DNA of 64,000 nt from Geosiphon pyriformis uo1 (lineage: Eukaryota; Fungi; Glomeromycota). The position numbers and the translations under genes are program-made. The notes below the pieces were generated by a model. The model was not told where the DNA came from and did not search any database. It worked only from the letters and a program-made list of their open reading frames with translations. The stretch spans positions 547,871-611,870 of the forward strand of contig JAAOMT010000577.1 of NCBI GenBank assembly GCA_016748015.1, read 5' to 3'. This document shows positions 1,830-63,699 of the stretch, piece after piece. How positions within the stretch are numbered: position 1 is the stretch's first letter; each line of letters starts with the position of its first letter.

Positions 1830-3690
1830 ATAGAACCAGTAGACTCTTCTGTTAGTAGTTTTAGATTTAGGTTTAGCTGGTTTGAGAACCAACTTAAATG
1901 CTAAAAAATAATATGTAGAAAGTGTTTATTTTTACATTGTATTTCATAAAAAACTGAAAAAGTCTGATGTAAATATTAGTATAGTTAACTTGTCTACTGG
2001 TCTTTTAAGTTATAATGATATTAATGTTTCTAATAAAAAATCTGTAGTGTTTTAAAGTAACAAAACTAATAGCAAAGCCAGTAGTATCAACAGTTTATTG
2101 GATGTAAAAAATATAAAAAATATGGTTGCCAAAAAAATTAGCTATGCAAATTCAAATAATTTAATAGTCAACAATAATATGAATAATACTACATTGCAAA
2201 AAACTTACACTCAAACATATGTATTGGGTTACTTACCAAAAATCTTTTCATTTGTAGATTTAAGCAATAATAATGACATTTTATTACTTTTATTACCTAA
2301 GTTTAATGGCTTTAAGCAACTCTTATTGATTAGATTATGTGTGTCAGAAAAATAAAGTTTTAATTTGGCAAAGTTTTTTGTATTAGATATTAAGTTGTTC
2401 ACTGTTTTTAACAAAACTAATAGTGATAAATTATTATATGTAAAAAAAAATTTTTATTATGTGGATGGTTTTGGAGAAGCTTCTATTCTCTTAAAGTTTT
2501 CGGAAATAATTAAATTTTTTTTCACACCTAAGTTAAATTTGAAAAAGACTAGGGAGATAACTGTTAGTAAGAAAATTTTAGTTAATAATAATGTAAAAAA
2601 AACAAACAGCTACACAAATTAAATGATAATTGTCAAGAAAATTCTAGTAGATTTTTTCAAATTATCAGTAAAATCAGTTTTTTCCAAAGTTGGCAAAATT
2701 ACTTTAATTAAAATACAGTTTATTGGTTTATGACAAAAAACTCTAATAGAATTTGAGTCATTAGATGTTGTTAGTTTGATTGTATCTAAGTAGTCTGTTA
2801 TCATAAAAAAAAATTTTGTACATATGACTTTGGTAATTAGTAATAAACAATTATGGGTTTCAAAAAATCTTCATTGAGCTTTATTGTATATTCTGCTAAT
2901 TGGCATTACTGTTCATAACTTTTCTAATTTGTTGAAATTATACAGTAAAAAAACTTGTTCTATTAGCCACAATTCTAGTTTATATGTACATAATAGATGT
3001 GTTATGGTTTGTTTTGTTAATAAAGCATCTAAAAAAACTGCTATTAGTTCTATTCTAGTTTTCAAGAATGTGAATTTGTATTAGGCTGGCCTTTTTTTGG
3101 CCTGTTGTGCTCAATATAAACAATTTGATCATGTTTTTGGTATATGTTTAGTGAATAAGAATTTGGATAATTACAGAAAATAATTAGTCACCTTTTAGAA
3201 TTAAATAAGTTTGGTAAATATATATAGAAAAAAACAGACATTAATTGCTTGTCTAGTTTTATTTGGTAAAAAGATTTAGGTTTAAATTGCTAGTAGTTCT
3301 ACTTTTCATGTAGTGTTTTTAGTTTTTCTACTGGGTTTTTTAAATATAAATAATAAGTTTGTCACTTTTAAATACAGTTTCACTAATCTTATAGAGCAAA
3401 TTAACAAGCTGGCTAAAAGATTAGATGCACTTGGGCCAATAATTTCTCAGCTTAGCTCTAAATATTAGCTGTTAGTAATTTTTTTATTATAGAATTAAGA
3501 GGTGGATATAGTAATAAGTGAGAATTTAGGTGTATTTACTAGTGGTAAAACTATTATAAAAGCAGTATTTATAAATTTATCTGTAGTTTTTAAATTGAAG
3601 GACAGTTTGATAAGTCTTTTAGATATAGTTATAGACCTTTTGGCCAAAATAGACAATCTTGTTTTGGGGTCAAAATTTTTTTCTTATTAA
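1830..3690 (+). pseudogene. LINE-b ORF1 (RRM-like region plus decayed CCHC knuckle)
   Basis: Start ATA(<ATG)GAACCAGTA; fragments KFFVLDIKL...VDGFGEAS and VFKNVNLY align with LINE-d ORF1; many in-frame stops. Confidence 0.8.
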
Positions 3691-6600
3691 TTGTTTAAAA
3701 GTTTGCTATATATAATGTTAAAAATATTAATGTTTCTATTAAGCAGAAGAATATTGTTTATTGGTATATAAATTCAGATAATATGGTTTCTATTATTACA
3801 AAAACAAAATTAAAATCTAGTATTAGGCCTTAAATTGTAGACAAATTTGATAAAATGTGAATTTTTACATCTGGTTTAGATAAAGGCTTTTTTGAAACTA
3901 AAATAATGATTATTATAAACAATTTTTTAACTTAGTATATTTCTAAAATAAAAAAAGTTCTTGATTAAGTTGTTTCTGTATAGCTTTTTTTCAAAAACAA
4001 GTTTTCAGTTATGATTCTTAGTTTGTATACTGGTGTTTTTGCTAAGATCAGATTTGGTTTAGCTTTAAAAGTTAACTTTTTTATAGATAAAGCAGTTAAC
4101 TTTAACAGTTTTGTGGTTTTGGATGAAAATTTTAACAAAGATAGATCTTAGAAAAATGCGAGTTTCAAGTTTTGTTTAGATTTAGATTTGGTCAATGCAT
4201 TTGATAGGAATATATTGGTTAATGTTTCTACTTAAAACAATTTAAAAAGTGTTAAGAAGATTATTGATTACATTTTTGTAAGTAAAAATTAGTTGTCTGC
4301 AATTATTGATTATAAGATTAAATTTATATCTGAATTTTTTAATATTAATTACAAAGCTGTTTCATTTTTGATTGGTTTGGATGAACTTTTGAATGTTTAA
4401 TTGAATAGCATAAGAAAGCAGTCTAACAAAAATTACTAAAAATTCAGAATAAAAAATACAGATAAAATCAAGTAGACTTATTTTAAGAAGTGTTCTTCTA
4501 ATAAATTGTCAACTTTAACAGATATGTTTATAAAAATGGAGATTTCTGGAAATTTGGATTTAATGTAAAAGATGTTAAAAAAAGTAATGATAGATTTGGC
4601 TAATAAATTTTTTCTAGATATTGGTTCAGTATTTTTGATTGCTCAAGAAACAAACAGTCATCAAAATTTTTTAAGTTAGAATTGCTGACTGCTAAAATGG
4701 CTAAGACTTTAAGATTAAGAAATGTGTCTAAGTTGTAATTTTTATTTTACACTTGGTTGGCTATTGATAAAAACAAAGCTTTAAAATACAAGACTTAATT
4801 CAAAATAGCATTAAGTCAATAAAAATTTTTAGCTGTTTGTCTGATATATAAAAAAGTTATTGCAAGTCCAAAATACATGAATTTAAAACTTTTGAAAATA
4901 TTGCTATTAGGTGTAGAATCAAAAAAAAAATGGGAAACCTTTGTTCAAACAAAAGATACATAATTAAAAGTATATTAGAAAAGTCTTTTCATAAGATAGT
5001 GTTCGATTATTTAGTGGTTAATAATAAGCTGGTTCTGAAATCTGAGAATATTAAAATTAAGATTAATACTATTATAGAAGATTAGACCAGAAAGTATGTG
5101 GTTCTTAAGTCTTTGTCTGGACTTTAAGTTAATTAATATGTTTCTTTGAACTATATAAACAATAATGTATTTTTAAATATTATAAAAATTATCAATTCTA
5201 GAGAGTTGGTACAAATGGTCAAAAATTTGCCAAATAAAAAAGCTGCTAATTTAAATAGTATTTTTAATAAGCTGTAGAAACATTGTGATAATAATATTCT
5301 TAAGTGTTTTTTAGGTCTTTTGAATATATATTTAATTTTGAATATGGTTTGGCTCTATATAAAAGAGTATGGGTTTTAATAATTCTTAAGTTTTATGATT
5401 AGAATAAAATTTTAACAAACACTTGACTTATTGTTTTAATTGAGATGGCCAAAAAAAATTTTTCTAAGATTCTTTTAAATCAAATTTTTTTTATCTACAG
5501 CTATTTTGGTGTGTTTTATAAAGACAACTTTTCTGTCTTAAAAAATACTTTAACACAATCACTTATTTTTACTGTTAGGTTTGTGATTAAAGATAGTTTA
5601 AAAAATAACAAAAAAATTTGGTTGGTTTTGCAGAACATGTAAAAAGCATATAACTTTATTGGCTAAACTTATTTAAAAGCTAATTTGTAATGTATTAAAA
5701 TATGCAAAAAGTTTATTGGTTTTTTTGATATTATTTATGAAGATAAAATAATTAAAATAATAACAAATTTTGGTCTTTCTGGTGATTATTAGATGCATAA
5801 TAATCTGAGTTAGGGTGAAATGTTCTTTCCTTTTCTTTAAATGATTTTTTATTACCTTCTCTTGTGTGAGATAAATTAACATAAATATTTGTGTAAATAC
5901 TGTATTAACACTAGTTTTGTGATTAAGACAGATAAAATTAAGGCCAAGAGTAAAAAAACTTTTTTTTTGCAGTTGGTGCTTTCATCAATGACATTATCTG
6001 AATTGGAAACAGTCAGGCATCTACACAATATATATTAAACATTGCCAGTAAATTTTTTTTGATCAATAATATTTTAATTAACAATGATAAAACCATAACT
6101 ATTCCTATTAATTACAAAGTTAAGAATGTCATTTTAAAGATCAATGGTTTGCTGATTTCAATTGCCAAGAATAGTGAGCCATATAAGTACTTGGTAATTT
6201 TTTTGTTAACTAAAGATTTATTCAGATCTAGTTTGGTTAAAGCTTATTCTGATGTTAAATTTTTCTCTAATATGGTGTTGAAAAAAGTGATTACTAATAA
6301 ACAGTTTTTATATTTGGTATTAGCAATTTTACAATCTATTGTTGGCTATTGATCACAATTTAGTTTTGTTTTATCTAATATATGTCACAAATAGGATATA
6401 ATGATCAAGAAAAATCTCAAGCTAAAGACTAATTTGCCAAGAAATTTTTCCAATAAGGCTTTGCATTATTTAGCTTTGTATAATTTAAAGCCTTTTAACC
6501 AGATTTAGGCTAAAAAGAAGTTAGCTTCATTGGTTATTTTTTCTAATGTTTTTGATATTCTTGGATATCTATTCAAATACAGATTTTTGGATTTGTAGAT

Positions 6601-8352
6601 CTTAGAATAAACTTTCTCAGATTTTTTGCAATTTCTTGTTAAGTTGTATGTTAGTTCAGTAAACAATTTTTTAGTTAGAATGGTAAAAATTTTCTTACTT
6701 AATAAATTATCTATTATAAACAATTTGTTCAATGTATTCTGCAGTCTGAAAAAGTTTTTAATATCAAATATTCTAAGTGAATTCTTATACTATAATTTAG
6801 TGTACTCTCCAAAGCAATTCAATATCATATTTAATAACAAACTTCTGAACAAAAAAAGTAATATGATAGATTGGAAAACTTTTCAACATTAAAAAAAATT
6901 GGATCTCAAGAGTTCTGTGTTTTATTGGTTTAACTTGGCTTCAAGATTTTTGCATGATAATAGTGCTTTGAAGTTGAATTTTATAGAAATTAATAGTTTT
7001 TTTGGTACAAATATTGTAAAATCTATTGGATTTTCTAAAGTACATGACAATTTGCTTGAGATTTGATCAAGTGTTATTGAAATGTATATGGATGGTTCTC
7101 TAAGGAATATGGATTGCTGGTAAGACTGTAGCATATTTTTCTGTGGTAGATATGGGAGTTGGTGTTGTAATTCATAGGCTTTTGTCTTTTATAATAACTA
7201 AGCTACAGGCTGTAACTCTGTTCTTAATGTGTATTTCATTTTCTTATATAATAATAGTGTATCTAAACAGTCAGGCTGCTATTGATGTTTGTGTTTCTAA
7301 GGTTAAATTTATTAAGCTGAACTTCCACAATTAATATTGGATGGAAAGAAAGCATATTGTCAGATTAATAAAGGTTAAATATTTTTCAATTTAATAAATA
7401 AAAATTAAAAGTTATTTAAATGTTCATAACAATATTAAGACTAACTTTTTGGCAAAAGTAGTTGTTTTTTTTCTTTTTTTTTTGTCAATTGAAGTGATTA
7501 ATTATTTTGTTATGGTTGAAGACATAGTTATATTTGGTAACATTCATTATTTTGTTTATAATATTTATAGATCAATTAATTGTGCTTAGTAAGAGACTAG
7601 TCCTGGTCACAATATTCTTCTTGATTCCTTAATTAATAAGGTAGATTGGGTGTTTATTATACAGATTTGGCACCTTAATTCTCATATGCTGTTTAAGTTT
7701 ATTAGCAAGAATTCGGCCAATTTGCATACCTATTTAATAAAAGCTATACATAGATGTTTATCAGTAGTAATTATGAAAAAATTGTATAATAAGTTGTATT
7801 TTAGAGTTTTGTGTTTGTTTTGTGAGAAAATTGAGTTGCTAAATTATGTTTTCACTTATACTAATGATGTTAGCATTTAAGAAAAGATTTTATTAAAGGC
7901 TTTGGATGTCTAAATTTTGTTAATTAGAACCTGTAACTCTTTTTTTGCTGTTTTAAAAACTTTTTCTGAGTGCTCATTGAATGTAAGATTGTATATAGTG
8001 ATTTGTAAAAGCTTTGTATTGAAACATTAGTATAATAAAACTGTTGTATTTTTTAAAAAAAAGGACAGGCTGTTGTAATAGTAATTAGATATGTAAAGTA
8101 TTTAGTAGAGAAATATTGTTTAAGAGTTTGATTTATGAAATCTAGACATAAGATAGATATAAAAAAGGCTGATTTAGTTAAAAATAGTGGTTTGGTGTCT
8201 AAATTGTCTTGTGATTTGGCTGAAAGTTTGTCAAATAGAATAGTTTATCTATTCAGTATTATTGAGTTTTTTGCTGTTAGCTTTGGCAGGCATAAGCCAT
8301 GTACTTTTTTTTTGGTTTAGGTAGTTATATTAGTGTTTATGTAGATATATAG
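3691..8352 (+). pseudogene. LINE-b ORF2 (AP endonuclease, RT, RNase H, C-terminal zinc finger)
   Basis: Decayed motifs: FAIYNVKNIN (APE ATCNVRG), KKIIDYIF near 4260, WLVLQNM*KAYN (QDMRKAYD) near 5630, GAFINDIIW (FVDD) near 5980, VYMDGSL near 7085, YLNSQAA, CLFCEKIELLNYVFTY near 7815. Confidence 0.9.
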
Positions 8353-20425: not shown

Positions 20426-21631
20426 TATTACCTAAGTAAAAAAACCAAACCAAGTTATGAAAAAATGTAATCAAAAACATGATAACACAAAATAACATAA
20501 AAGAACACAGAATAATACATAATAATATGGGATAACACAATACAAAATATAATAATATAATATAGCACAAAATAATAAGAATAACTAGTAATAACATAAA
20601 AAAATAAAGCAATAACAAAAAAAACAAACAAATAATGAAGATAATTAGTAATAACATAAAAAAACAAAGCAAAAACAAAAATAGCAAACAATAATTAGCA
20701 ATAATAAAACAATTAAAAACAGTTTTATAAAACTAAGAGAAATATATAAAAAAGAGTATTTATAGAAGATAGAAAAACAAACAGATAGACAAAAATCAAC
20801 TTCCTTCTACCTATATTTGTTACATATCTTTTGTTATATCTTATATTTTATATTATAGAAATAAAAGAAATATTAACAAAACTTAAAATTTTTACCTGTA
20901 TGATTCTTATATTTTACGTATTATAGCTAAATTAATCTTATTTTTTTATTCCCAGTCAGATGTTTTTGGCATAAAACAGTTTTAAACTATTATAACTTAA
21001 ACTAATTATACTTGATTATGGTAATTAATAATACTAATTTATTTATTTTTATTTTTTTTATCTTTTTTTGATTTTTTTTTTGATTTTTTTTATTTTCTCT
21101 TGTGAAATAACAACATAAGAAAATTGACTGTCTGAAAATAGACTTTGTAATAACCTGGTAAAAGAAAAAAGCTTTCTTTAAGATTGAATATTAATATTAT
21201 CTTATTAGCTTATCAAAAAGACAAAAAGACACCACCAAACTCTAATGACTATGCTTAACTATTTTGAAGAAAATAGTTTATATACAAGAAATTACAACAT
21301 TGTAAAACCATTTCTTTGTGCTTTATAATCAAAGAACTCCATGGGTAAATTCATATTAATTAGAAAGATCTTCAGAGACTAATAATACTAATACTTTAAA
21401 CAATTCTACCAAAAAAAATATTAAAAGCTTACCAAATATTATTACCATATATTATCAAATTTATTCATAACATTTGGTGCTTTTTGTGAGGTTATAAAAT
21501 TCACAGAAACAGAACACTCCAGAAATTCACAAAAGTGGCAACTATTGGAACAGAAAAAAAAATTATTTACTATACAAAAAAGTTTTATTTTAACACTTTA
21601 AGGAAGATTTAAGGATACCATTAGAAATCAT
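20426..21631 (+). mobile_element. Gypsy-like family C fragment: 5' LTR (20426-21472), PBS and about 150 bp of internal sequence
   Basis: Starts tattacc (<TGTTACC) where LINE-c stops; ends ...cataaCA followed by tt-TGGTGCTTTTTGTGAGGTT, resembling the family B PBS; repeat array followed by TATATAAA near 20743. Confidence 0.7.
21475..21493 (+). promoter_or_regulatory. tRNA primer-binding site of element C
   Basis: TGGTGCTTTTTGTGAGGTT, 2 nt after the LTR end; TGG pairs with the tRNA CCA. Confidence 0.75.
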
Positions 21632-57975: not shown

Positions 57976-60230
57976 TTTTTTTTTTATTAACATTTAACAA
58001 GTAAGACCCAAATGTTATTTAGCACAATATATTAAACTAAGTAATCTAAACTAAGTTCAAATTATGCATTTTCTATATATAACCAATCATTTGGACTAAT
58101 TAAAACAATACTATAAAATTATCTTAACAAATACTGTATATTAATACCAAAAAAAACTACAAAGCTTGTAAAAACCAAAATTAATAATATGTGTTTTCAC
58201 AATACTAAGTAATCTAACAACATTATAAGAAAGTAGTAATAAAAACCCATGGGTCTTTAGAAGTACTAAATTATTATCCATAATTAAATTTTTTTTTCTA
58301 TAATCACTTTAAACTTAGTTTTTACTATCTATACTTCTATTTAATAAGTTATTCTTAAGTTCCTTATCAGATAATAATTAACTTGCCAGCAATCTTAATA
58401 CAGCCAAAAATAAATAAAACTTCCAAATACCAATTCTTAAAAACAAAACTTTTGCATAAAACTGTATATATTTTAATATCAAAAGCACATATAAAAAGTA
58501 TCTATATAATACAAAACAATAATAGACTTATTTCTAACATGAAGGTCTACCAAATCAAATGTAAATTAAGCAAGTCCTTATAAACAGCAAAATTTATTAT
58601 ATATGTAAATAAGTAATTAGAAAGTTTTACTTTTACATAATAAAGACATAATACATTAAAGTAAGCTTTATTATATAAGTATTTTTTAATAGTGATTGGC
58701 AAATAATAATATAAAATTTTCATAAAATACATATACAAATTAGCAGTAAATTTACTTATAAAACCAAATGTTATATGTAAATCAAGATGCAAAATCAATA
58801 AAATTCAATCCCAATTTACATTTCAAATCATATTTGTACTAATAATATTAGACTCAGATCTAACCTTCCAGCAAGTTTAATAAATAACCCAAAAATACTG
58901 CAAGTAAAATAACAAATATTTTTAAACACTTCTACCCTACCAGCCTTAATATAATTCTTCCTAATAAGAACAGGAAGTATCAAATTTAAACATGAAGCTA
59001 AGTTGGTCAGCTTATTAGCACACTAATTACCAGAGACACTAAATGATCTTTGATTTTAAACCAAGATACATTAAGCCTCTTATTTTTAATATAGTTCACT
59101 ATACTATGTTTTTCCATCCAATATTGATTGTGAAAATTTGGTAAAGCCAATCTTAATTTAGCAATACAAGCATCTAAAACAGTTTAACTATCTAAATATA
59201 TCACAATACTACTATTAACTAGGACATATTTCAAAGCTAAAGCAATAGTCTATAATTCAAACATCATAAAAAAAACTAAATTACCAACTTCCACACCAAT
59301 ATTCAGATTTAAATTAGCAAAAATATAGCCATACTACATCTCATTTTACATGTTTCCAAGTTTTTAAACAATCTATCTGTGTAAACATTAATAACATTTA
59401 AATTGGCATTAGAAAAACACTATCACACTATAAAAAAACTACCAGAACTGAAAATACTTAAAAGCTAAAAGCTGTTAGTAAAAGACTGTATAACAAAATC
59501 ATAGAGAAAATTGATCAGATATTTGTATATCAATTTGAACCATACAGAGATTAGGCATCTAAGATCAAGTCTTTTCTAGCAATAAAAGCTAAACCTTTTA
59601 AGTAATTTAAAAACATTATAGAATACTAAATTTTCTAATATAAAAGACATTGGAATGCCTTCTGAGAACTGAAATGCAGAAAAAAAAAATTGTTGTTAAA
59701 AAATATATTATAATTCAAGAAAATTTTTACTGTACTAGCCAAGAAGTTATTGATCAGACTAATTCTTAACCTAAAAAAAATCTGCAAAAAATGCATTAAA
59801 GACCAACTTAAGACCTGCAAATCCAGGGACCTATGGCTAAACAAATGACTAAAAATTCTACTAGCATTTGAAAAACAAAGCACTAAAGCTAACTTATTTT
59901 CTACTTGTATTTGCTTGAAAAATTTCAGACTATACAAAGATAAATAGTAAAGAGATTTATTGGAAAAGTCTCTGAACAGACCAGTCTTTATTTTCAAACT
60001 TTTTCTAATTAATGTATTCTATTTATTACATATACTCTTAGAGACAAAGCTAAATTGGGTTCTGTAATTAATAATAAGATATAGTATTGTCAAAACCAAA
60101 TAAAAAAACTATTTATCTAAAATAGCCTTTCTCAAAATCATATTAGCAAAAAACCTAATATTTAAATGAGCTTTTATTAAGCTAAGTTTGAACAAACTCT
60201 TAAAAAACAAAAAAATACCAAGATATAATA
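57976..60230 (-). mobile_element. LINE-e: 3' fragment (post-RT region, RNase H, zinc finger, 3' UTR, poly-A)
   Basis: T-run at 57976-57985; family 3' UTR; ORF-track 58547..58798 and 59635..59997 align with LINE-d ORF2; VYTD near 59380; YLGIF near 60220. Confidence 0.85.
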
Positions 60231-60244
60231 TAATATAAATTAAT

Positions 60245-60865
60245 ATTTAAAAAATAATGTGTTTTTTAGTTAATAAAAGATTAAAAAAATTGATAGTATT
60301 TTTACCAAAAAATTTTTAAAAGTTTTATAAATTAAAAATTTTAGTATTTAAAATTATTAAATTTTACAAATAAAGCTCAATAATAAGTTAATTTTTTAAT
60401 AAGTTGTTAAATGTTTTTAAACAATAATAAAACTTTAAATATTTAAGTTTTATTAAATTTTTGTATTAGTTTTATTTAAATAAAAAAAAGTTGATATTAA
60501 ACAATATTTTTAAATTATAAAGTTATTAGTATTAGTTTTTAATTTATGTTAATAATTATATTTTTTAATATTATATATATTATTATATATAATAAAATTT
60601 TATATGTAATTAAAATTTTATTTAATAAAAAAGTTATAAATTTATTTAATATTATTAATGACTTATAAAAGCATTTTAATTATTCTGTTTTAAACATGTT
60701 TCTAAATCTGTTAAATTTTTATTTGATTTATGAATTTGTTTTTTAATTTTAAAAAAAGCTTAAATATTTATAATTTTTATGTTACATAAATGAAAAAAAG
60801 TTTTAATTAATATTAGACTTATTGTTTTGATTAAAACTGTTTAAAAAAATTTTATGAATATTTAA
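60245..60865 (+). mobile_element. LINE-f: very decayed ORF2 fragment (linker to RT start), ending at the relic telomere
   Basis: 60250-60360 aligns with LINE-d 16660-16790; attaatgacttataaaagcat = (T)NDLWKH; aatattagacttattgttttgattaaaactgtttaaaaaaatt = NTRPIALIETARKI after reversing transitions. Confidence 0.7.
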
Positions 60866-60890
60866 GTAAAAATAAAATTATGAATAAAAA

Positions 60891-61260
60891 TTAAAAATAA
60901 GGTTAAAAATAAAAATATAAATAAAAATAAAAATAAAAATAAAAAGTAAAATAAAAATAAAAATAAAAATAAAAATAAAAATAAAAATAGAAATAAAGAT
61001 AAGAATTAAAATAAAAATAAAAATAAAGATAAAAATAAGAATAAAATTAAAGATAGCAATAAGATTAAAGATAAAAATAGAAAAAAAAATAAGGTTAAAG
61101 ATAAGAATAAAAATAGGAATACAGATAAAAATTAGGATAAAAATAGAGATAGTAAAAATAAAAATAAAAATAATTATTGAGATAAGAATAGGAATACAGA
61201 TAAGAATTAGAATAAAAATAAAAATAAGAATAGAAATAAGAATAAAAATAATAATTAAAG
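60891..61260 (+). repeat. Hexamer array (ATAAAA with G variants): decayed ATAGGG/TTAGGG telomeric tract
   Basis: 44 in-phase hexamers from 60891 to 61154, then a phase shift and more units; G occurs almost only at unit positions 4-6. Confidence 0.8.
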
Positions 61261-61396
61261 ATTTCTGTTAATTTTTTGCATGTTTAATTTATAGAGAAAA
61301 ATAATTTTTAGTGATAAAAAATGGAATAAAGTTAGAAATGTAATACAAAAAAATTTTATTATTAGTATAATAATATTATCAAATTTAATTCATACT

Positions 61397-61418
61397 TATA
61401 TATATATATATATATATA
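61397..61418. repeat. (TA)11 microsatellite
   Basis: Direct read. Confidence 0.9.
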
Positions 61419-61435
61419 TTATGTATAATAAAAGA

Positions 61436-61685
61436 TTTATTGGTATTAGTGTTTATAATTTTTCTAATTTATTAATATATTTTACTAATAAAACTGTTAA
61501 AAAATTTGTTATTAGTTCTGTTTTAGTTTTTAAAAGTGTGAATTTGCATTAGATATATTACAGATAGTAAAAATATGAATAATTATAATAAAAAGTTTGT
61601 TATTTCTTATAATTGAATTTAATTGGTTAATATATATAAGAGAAAGCAGATTCTAATTTTCTATTTGATTTTATTTAGTAACAAA
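61436..61685 (+). mobile_element. Small, multiply deleted LINE ORF1 fragment
   Basis: attagttctgttttagtttttaaaagtgtgaatttgcattag and ttggttaatatatataagagaaagcaga match LINE-b at about 3043-3084 and 3211-3239. Confidence 0.7.
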
Positions 61686-62591
61686 TTTTTAATGTTTTTA
61701 TTTGAATACTTTATTTATTAATTTTTGAAATATAAATAAAATATTTATTAATTTAAAGAATATTACTTTTAAGTTTTATATTTTATAATAAATATAAAAT
61801 TTTTTCTACAGATAAAATTTATTTCTACTTATCATAAAATATATTAAGTTTTTAAATTAATTAAAAGCATTATTAATCTTAAAAAAATACATATTTTGTT
61901 TAATAATTATATTTAATTATTAATAATTTTTACAAAATTATAGAAATTTACTTTTCTTAAATATTATTACAATAAAAAATACTTATTTGTTTTTTAGTTT
62001 TTTATATAAATCCAAGTTTTTCTATTCAGCTTATTTTTTTTTGATAAATTTATCATTTTGTTAATTTGATTAATAGAATTTTAAATAAATTTGTTAGATA
62101 TTTTTGGTTTTGATTATATATTAAATAAGATTTATTTGGTTAAAACATAATATTTTTGTTAATATTATTGCTTTATTTCTTGTTAATAGGTTTTTAATAT
62201 TAATTTTTTGGTTATTTTTACTGAGTTTTTTTTTGTTTAATTATCATAATTTAAATTTTAAATAGTTTTTTTTAAATAATTTTTGTAATACTTTAATTTT
62301 TTTATTAAAAATCAAACTAATCAGTTTCAAATTCTTAAAAAAAAATAAACAAAACTTATATTTATTACTTAAAAAATGAAAAATTAATAATACTAGTATT
62401 AAATATATAAATTATATTATTAATAATTTTATTTTGTTTTTTTTTTTAAGTTGTTTAAATATTCTTTTGAACATATTGTAATATAATTATTAAATATATT
62501 TTTATTAATAATTAATTTTTTATAGTTAGTTTACATATTGTCTAAAGAATTACTATTATTATTAAAAATAATAAATGCTAATTTGGTTTTT

Positions 62592-62771
62592 TTATTTTTT
62601 TTGTTTAGGGATTTGGGGAAATGACATATCATTAAGACCGGAAGAACCGATTTTGAGCACAAGCTGGTCAGCAAGCTTTTGAACAATGGCCGACTCCCGT
62701 GTTCCCACGGAAGGGACGTCCACGTCCATGTTGTCAGAAGCAATGGTAGTGTGAGAGATAGATGTAGACAT
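62592..62771 (-). pseudogene. Preserved 5' end (59 codons) of an unidentified gene or element ORF, transcribed away from the telomere; body probably erased by mutation
   Basis: caaacATGtct start context; MSTSISHTTIASDNMDVDVPSVGTRESAIVQKLADQLVLKIGSSGLNDMSFPQIPKQKK*; the stop coincides with the GC-to-AT transition. Confidence 0.5.
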
Positions 62772-63699
62772 GTTTGAAAAGTTAGGGTTTAGAGAAGCAA
62801 GTAAGATATGAAGTGCTCAAGTAAAGCAAACGGTCGTCTGCGCAGAAAATCGTTTTTAAAGGGTGTTAGCCTAAGATCGTTTTTCGACGCACTACAACCA
62901 CTCTACAAGCGACGTATATATACTTGCAAAATCAAACATGTAACGTGTGAAAAAATCACAAAAAACGAAGTTAAACACGGAAAAAAGACCGAAACACCGA
63001 AATCACAAAACCCCGTACAAAATAACAAATGCGCATGCATTAATTAAAAAGAAGGGCCAAATTCCGAAGAATTTAACCGTGGTATAACCATCCAAAACGG
63101 AGTGTTCCATAAACAGGAAACACAAAAAACGTAAACCCAATAAAATCGATTTTAGCAAACACATGTTGCTTTTATCGAAAATTCCATGGAACATCGTAAT
63201 ACAACGTGTGAAAACGATAGGTCCAAAAGAAAGGGGAAGGTCTGACGAGCAAAACGAGCTACAGATCATCCCCAACGACCACAAACTGGTGCCAGTACAC
63301 AAGGAATAACAAAATTCCTTGGAGAAAGTAAAGGCCCGAAGCGAGTGGTACCAATTTGAAATTGATAGCCCACGGGTGATGTAACAGCCGAGTCACGCAA
63401 AAAAGACGTGATCAAAAACACGGCGGAAGACAGACTGTAGATCTGTACAAATCAGGCAGGAAAACACGAACCAGCTGGAAGGTTCCAGCAAAAACATGAT
63501 TACAAGCCATCGCCACATCGCCACTACCGAAAACAGGCAGGATGGGCAAGTCTAACCAAATTAGGAAAGGATAGCCCAAAACCGCCAGAAAGTTCCCTCA
63601 AAAAATGACTCAAGTCATAGACTTGGGGGAGACTAGCCAAAAAAGGCTAGTCAGGTGCTTATCTTTCCCGATCAGGTAAAGATCAGAGAACAATGACAC
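62600..63699. other. CpG-rich telomere-adjacent sequence
   Basis: Abrupt rise in GC and dozens of CpGs, against almost none in the preceding kilobases. Confidence 0.9.
62772..62925 (-). promoter_or_regulatory. Candidate promoter/5' UTR: TATATATA (62915-62922) and telo-box AAACCCTAA (62782-62790)
   Basis: Motifs read directly upstream of the 62771 ATG; function is inferred. Confidence 0.4.

Follow-up and report, generated by a model that had tools for sequence, protein, structure and literature searches.

A microsatellite-like (ATAAAA)n array near a chromosome end of Geosiphon pyriformis is a probable decayed telomere

An array of hexamers near a chromosome end of the fungus Geosiphon pyriformis uo1, which resembles a plain (ATAAAA)n microsatellite, is very probably a decayed telomere stump. 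A telomere formed at a healed break in a dispersed repeat (repeat X) would have been copied between chromosome ends, internalized and degraded by G-to-A change. A preliminary description of this DNA had likewise regarded the array as a G-to-A decayed ATAGGG/TTAGGG tract consisting of former-end material. This reading is upheld by three independent lines of evidence: intermediate stages in the form of gradients between decayed and intact repeats, a genome-wide distribution with subtelomeric bias and uniform polarity, and a junction with a truncated copy of X that is shared between ends. The array is a relic without evident function, which serves as a historical marker and as a record of C-to-T decay.

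Composition and phase of the array

The analyzed DNA (the window) comprises the last 64 kb of contig C771 in the 128.3-Mb assembly of G. pyriformis uo1, which consists of 792 contigs. Its non-coding DNA has a GC content of 8-20%, and Ty3/Gypsy elements are abundant. The features of its distal part are listed in Table 1. The live telomere of C771 is hexameric, matching the period of the array, and begins 2,439 bases beyond it in identical polarity.

Table 1. Features of the distal part of the window (positions in the 64-kb stretch)
Feature	Position	Strand	Basis or remark
Truncated piece of the dispersed AT-rich repeat X, telomere-adjacent	60476-60863	+	Homology to internal X copies stops at about 60863
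Putative fossil telomere: array of some 65 hexamers, predominantly ATAAAA	60864-61260	+	Wraparound alignment; G strand runs towards the chromosome end
Low-copy AT-rich spacer distal to the array	61261-61671	+	Homology only to C587 (83%) and, as far as 61493, to C669
Second dispersed AT-rich repeat, 925-bp copy	61672-62595	+	652 first-look candidates; end marked by a sharp rise in GC
59-aa open frame	62592-62771	-	Start falls inside the 351-bp module
351-bp module	62593-62943	.	Four other copies in the genome with 76-81% identity (C635, C332, C613, C346)
Single-copy sequence of about 45% GC	62944-63699	.	Directly abuts the live telomere
Live telomere at the contig end	63700-64000	+	Inner ATAGGG block, mixed ATAGTG, outer TTAGGG

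Wraparound alignment of the 64-kb window to ATAAAA yielded one strong array of about 65 units, which ends at 61259/61260; a second strong array of this kind was not found in the window. The preliminary description had placed the left edge at 60891. The array itself was confirmed, but it begins slightly earlier, at 60864. All in-phase unit types that had been listed (ATAAAA, ATAGAA, ATAAGA, ATAAAG, ATAAGG, ATAGGA, ATAGAG, TTAAAA, TTAAAG and ATAGTA) were recovered by the alignment. The hexamer period is maintained throughout with few indels. The base counts are A58 T5 G2 at unit position 1, T63 G1 A1 at position 2, A59 T6 at position 3, A54 G7 C2 T2 at position 4, A48 G15 at position 5 and A54 G11 at position 6. 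Accordingly, 63 of 65 units keep T at position 2 and 59 of 65 keep A at position 3, and the [A/T]-T-A core is intact at 91-97%. In the live telomere of the window, G occupies positions 4, 5 and 6 in 50, 47 and 50 of 53 units, respectively. The same positions of the array, when pooled, hold 156 A, 33 G, 5 T and 3 C, and 17% of the original G is retained.

The surviving G were said to sit almost only at positions 4-6, and the counts per position agree with this, with 33 G at these positions and 2-3 elsewhere. Under a null model in which each of the five A positions can acquire G by A-to-G change, the location of 33 of 35 G at positions 4-6 has a binomial p of 5e-6 relative to an even spread. Weak AT-rich look-alikes in the window, e.g. 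at 20475-20799, have their G evenly distributed over the unit positions. None of the approximately 65 units of the window array harbors all three G; the telomeric origin therefore rests on the phase statistics and on homologous arrays elsewhere. The G fraction per 10 units along the array is 0.10, 0.00, 0.13, 0.27, 0.32, 0.27 and 0.17, values that resemble the proximal 400 bp of arrays continuing into a live telomere. It had also been proposed that the unit mix and the polarity mirror the live telomere. The polarity is indeed the same, but little weight attaches to the single ATAGTA unit, since the two paralogous copies of the array do not preserve it.

No decayed inner zone was found in the live telomere of the window (63700-64000). 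At 63700-63760, intact ATAGGG units are positioned directly on single-copy DNA of 45% GC, and telomeres abutting the AT-rich repeat X at other ends show about 1 kb of decay. The end in the window may be young, or decay may require, or spread from, adjacent repeated DNA.

Related arrays at other chromosome ends

The survey of other ends covered 18 retrieved stretches and 30 loci of about 3.4 kb; the genome has approximately 41 telomeric contig ends. The preliminary description had suggested a search for similar relic arrays near other chromosome ends, and such arrays are present in the same phase and polarity. On C93, C669, C44, C732 and C384, and twice in tandem on C681, the units nearest the chromosome body hold about 5% G, and towards the tip the arrays pass into intact ATAGGG/TTAGGG. 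The decay seen in the window array also affects the innermost kilobase of live telomeres at these other ends. On C93, the left end of C669 and C44, and twice on C681, the retention of G in blocks of 10 units climbs from 0.03-0.25 to 1.0 within about 1 kb. The Spearman rho of the gradients is 0.75 for C93, 0.60 for C44, 0.49 for the distal array of C669, 0.48 for C384 and 0.36 for C732, and 0.74 and 0.78 for the tandem gradients of C681. Pooling of 1,754 clean units from 12 arrays gave 41, 3, 11, 850, 872 and 815 G at positions 1 to 6, so that 97.9% of G is located at positions 4-6.

T was observed at each of positions 4-6 in 10-15% of the units in some decayed arrays (C732, C44 and C669). Only the T at position 5 is explained by the ATAGTG word, and the others may derive from G-to-T change, A-to-T change or small slips of register. 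In these arrays, the frequency of T makes G-to-A change alone an insufficient explanation.

Several ends contain more than one tract. Intact internal telomere tracts are located 4.8 kb from the tip on C44 and 0.8 kb from the tip on C681. On C681 (183800-191467, locus positions 4940-7668), two complete decay gradients are arranged in tandem: a decayed array is followed by 348 bp of intact telomere, a fragment of X (query positions 140-337), a second gradient and the terminal telomere. The arrangement suggests that an X-plus-telomere module was recently re-duplicated onto an existing telomere. At the contig starts C549:9-2027 and C646:256-2151 (coordinates of the query matches), an inner telomere-derived array is accompanied by an outer one. 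Burial of telomere tracts therefore seems to be common at the ends of this genome. On C44 (1-10000), positions 1841-4152 of the reverse complement, which lie between the inner and the outer array, share inverted homology with window 57977-60236 at 65-68% identity. This indicates another repeated element common to subtelomeres; an inverted array near 57977, for which this homology prompted a search, was absent. The terminal 10 kb of the 2.3-Mb contig C669 (C669:1-10000) have a GC content of only 5.9% and contain a run of N beside repeat X.

The distribution of the arrays in the genome is strongly biased. In 128 Mb, 18 arrays with six or more pure ATAAAA units were located. Seven of these lie at most 11 kb from a contig end, and all seven point outward; the probability of finding at least four pure-unit arrays near the approximately 41 telomeric ends by chance is p = 4e-7. 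Long G-speckled arrays (370-970 bp) are all positioned near contig ends and directed outward. When the half-decayed C93 array was used as a BLAST query, about 38 contigs were matched, almost only at contig ends. All but one of the minus-strand matches are located within 9 kb of a contig start, and the plus-strand matches coincide with right-end telomeres where these are known. A genome-wide scatter without subtelomeric bias or polarity had been named in advance as the observation that would speak against a telomeric origin; the long arrays show the opposite pattern.

These data bear on the reading as an ordinary (ATAAAA)n microsatellite, which would have grown by slippage in AT-rich DNA and acquired its G by random A-to-G change, in part spread by slippage. 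The genome is very AT-rich, short pure ATAAAA tracts do occur at internal sites, and the array contains an internal 30-base duplication (61113-61142 and 61188-61217, with G/A differences only), so that its units are not independent. However, G shuns the two A positions flanking the T, the internal ATAAAA arrays are only 42-96 bp long with at most 1 G, the homologous arrays grade into intact telomere, and subtelomeric bias and polarity are strict. Neither a random register nor an occurrence in both orientations throughout the genome, as would be typical of slippage microsatellites, was observed for these arrays. The microsatellite explanation is thus already largely refuted and very improbable.

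Repeat X junction, paralogous copies and distal DNA

Repeat X in the window (388 bases) represents an internal part of a dispersed repeat that occurs in hundreds of copies; 456 first-look candidates were obtained genome-wide. In 17 internal copies X extends past the junction point and is followed by other sequence, without an array. In contrast, the subtelomeric copies in the window and on C587, C669, C44, C732, C384 and C279 are cut at one common point, after which the array begins. On C681 and C93, X is cut about 50 bases earlier and then also followed by the array. The X/array junction is common to at least nine ends. An abrupt start of the array within a sequence that is continuous elsewhere is characteristic of de novo telomere addition, and the comparison of the copies fits a break that was healed by telomere addition and later copied between ends.

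Window 60342-62602 is paralogous to C587 (83%), and 60549-61493 to C669 (86%). The array itself corresponds unit by unit to C587 3771-4157 and C669 7472-7868, including the odd units ATAGCA and ATACAG. The paralogous arrays differ mainly by G/A; for example, C587 has preserved TTAGGG where the window has ATAAGG. Inside the array, 20 A/G differences and 8 others separate the window from the C587/C669 pair. Divergence of the flanks is of the ordinary AT-rich kind and includes numerous A/T transversions. Polarizing the changes among the three paralogs by parsimony was rejected: C587 and C669 are sister copies in which parallel losses of G are common, and the procedure gave misleading counts of A-to-G changes.

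The paralogs also bear on the order of events. The preliminary description had assigned the array to a former end of this chromosome. The former-end nature of the material is retained, but the duplication of 60342-62602 on C587, and in part on C669, implies that the array was internal before this duplication; it may never have formed the tip of this particular chromosome. Given this duplication and a junction common to at least nine ends, the original healing event may have taken place on this or on another chromosome.

Since orthologous units of the paralogs differ by G/A, the A-rich units appear to be the result of point mutation after synthesis rather than of variant synthesis. Alternatively, they might have been made as such, by slippage or change of the telomerase template or by recombination, so that the array would represent an old telomere layer with a different repeat. 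Telomeres layered from several repeat words, as seen in this genome, and the plausibility in principle of template variation speak for this view. It is nevertheless very improbable, as all eight A/G combinations at positions 4-6 are found across the arrays, the gradients are smooth rather than arranged in blocks, and the differences between orthologous units are single G/A changes.

An assembly artefact, i.e. collapsed or chimeric low-complexity sequence, might be suspected from the low complexity of the region and its closeness to a contig end. However, the array and both its flanks recur on two further contigs (83-86% identity, private substitutions). In addition, 81% of the sampled words of 61261-63690 recur in contigs that were assembled independently from a sequencing run; this run, the only one in which the distal 2.4 kb was found, is probably from the source sample. 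An artefact is thus extremely unlikely.

The 2.4 kb distal to the array had been described as one block of new sequence that was hypermutated after its addition. This view could not be maintained, as the region is a composite of a 410-bp spacer, a 925-bp dispersed repeat and 1.1 kb of unmutated sequence with 45% GC. Most matches of the second dispersed repeat cover query positions of about 412-1335 and end at 1333-1335, which correspond to window 62593-62595. The sharp GC step at this site coincides with the end of the dispersed repeat, the end of the C587 homology (62602) and the start of the 351-bp module. Besides being a boundary of composition, the site is therefore a point where repeats meet. 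Within the distal 2.4 kb, no Rfam match was obtained, and the ORF listing contains neither a long ORF nor a reverse transcriptase frame.

The array might also owe its existence to a mobile element, either as a simple-repeat tail of X or as part of a telomere that was split by a telomere-targeting retrotransposon represented by the distal 2.4 kb. Both X and 61672-62595 are dispersed repeats, and insertion of telomeric retrotransposons is described as a source of internal telomere tracts in Magnaporthe (PMC7367193). A tail of X is contradicted by the 17 internal copies that lack an array at the junction point. The distal repeat is dispersed genome-wide and not telomere-specific, the insert lacks a reverse transcriptase frame, and its first 410 bp are low-copy. 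As a composite without a long ORF, the insert does not resemble telomere-targeting retrotransposons such as MoTeR, SART-TRAS or terminal Penelope-like elements. An origin from a mobile element is thus very improbable.

The decayed telomere stump would have arisen in four steps. A copy of X would have been broken at about window position 60863 and healed by ATAGGG-type repeats with a few TTAGGG, the G strand pointing outward. The resulting X-plus-telomere end was copied to many chromosome ends, as shown by the common junction. In one lineage of copies (the window, C587 and the inner array of C669), other DNA would then have been joined to the outer side of the first 400 bp of the tract, with recombination or break-induced copying from other subtelomeres as the probable route, and the internal stump would no longer have been renewed by telomerase. 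In the last step, cytosines of the C strand (CCCTAT, without CpG) were converted to thymine. On the strand presented here, about 83% of G has changed to A, the T and A positions are 91-97% intact, and the remainder is (ATAAAA)n with stray G only at positions 4-6.

Decay of the repeats and comparison with known systems

At the A/T positions 1-3 of the window array, G or C has appeared in only about 1.5% of cases. The directionality of change in the array is far stronger than flanks of about 10% GC suggest at equilibrium, although the flanks may not be at equilibrium. The decay had been ascribed to hypermutation by a mutator. This is plausible, but the data do not distinguish it from neutral decay over a long time with a strong bias towards AT. 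A dedicated mutator is likely, as opposed to general AT-biased decay, but not proven; the many A/T transversions in the flanks mean that a special mutator is not demonstrated. The claim that C is hit in a non-CpG context holds, as CCCTAT lacks CpG and all three of its cytosines decay. In units with one loss, positions 4, 5 and 6 are affected 60, 107 and 114 times, respectively. Context thus has only a mild influence, which does not resemble the preference for CpA of RIP in Neurospora.

RIP of Neurospora and other Dikarya introduces C-to-T and G-to-A transitions that turn repeats AT-rich, and subtelomeres are among the affected regions. To our knowledge, RIP is not established in glomeromycotinan fungi. 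The decay described here resembles RIP in that transitions of this type, which are observed in the window array, turn repeated DNA including subtelomeres AT-rich. It differs from RIP in that the cytosines are present in CpC and CpT contexts only, which makes a CpA (TpG) preference impossible; all three cytosines of CCCTAT are lost in spite of the absence of CpA. Most of the unmutated sequence at 62593-63699 is single-copy, and repeats make up the mutated parts, which is compatible with the confinement of RIP to duplicated DNA. In addition, C5 cytosine methyltransferase domains are encoded at several loci of the genome, which makes methylation-driven deamination feasible. It is conceivable, though rather doubtful, that a C-to-T mutator acting in all contexts, either RIP-like or through non-CpG methylation spreading from repeats, continuously erodes the telomeres from inside. 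Telomerase would then rebuild only the outer 150-350 bp, and ends seated on unique unmutated DNA would escape. If this is true, the telomeres are a kilobase-long, time-ordered record of the mutator.

Degenerate subtelomeric interstitial telomeric sequences are represented by the X-(TG1-3)-Y' junctions of yeast and the TTAGGG-like islands between duplicated blocks of human subtelomeres. As in these systems, the tracts of G. pyriformis are degenerate and telomere-oriented, lie between a conserved adjacent sequence and distal DNA, and are shared by duplication. In contrast to the yeast and human tracts, the decay is almost purely G-to-A and nearly complete, so that it mimics an unrelated AT microsatellite, and a truncated dispersed repeat serves as the conserved proximal element. 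Also unlike yeast, no Y'-like helicase element was found here. The proximal parts of human telomeres carry variant repeats (TTGGGG, TGAGGG and others). They share with the arrays of G. pyriformis an inner zone that is not renewed by telomerase, point changes and a gradient of purity from proximal to distal. However, the decay in G. pyriformis is far deeper (to about 5% G), directional from G to A and extends over about 1 kb, and the intact part comprises only 150-350 bp in the assembly.

Telomere tracts that lie inside subtelomeres, and in many cases are degenerate and common to several ends, form an established class (PMC9498494). In Magnaporthe, telomere repeats are buried when an end gains new sequence, and their relics mark where ends used to be (PMC7367193). 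The arrays of G. pyriformis resemble the MoTeR system of Magnaporthe oryzae in that telomere repeats are internalized by new end sequence and the relics tag sequence that was once telomeric. The tandem re-duplicated element-plus-telomere module on C681 likewise resembles the break-induced copying proposed there. Unlike in Magnaporthe, no telomere-specific retrotransposon is involved here, and the Magnaporthe tracts are short, intact and not decayed. For the fungal group of G. pyriformis, no description of near-complete directional decay or of deep gradients in live telomeres was found in a literature search that covered part of the journals. Thus, the class of relic is known; distinct here is the near-complete, microsatellite-like decay, which is unusually clean and recurs at many ends, together with the deep gradients in live telomeres.

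In the annotation of this genome, long (ATAAAA)n tracts close to chromosome ends should not be entered as simple microsatellites. The arrays provide a clean substrate for C-to-T change, with an identical six-base start, three cytosines in known non-CpG contexts and an order of age that is given by the position in the array. The known start sequence and the age order make decay rates and context preferences directly readable. For the biology of G. pyriformis, the arrays point to chromosome ends that are repeatedly rebuilt by breaks in a repeat, healing with telomere sequence, copying between ends and burial of old telomeres.
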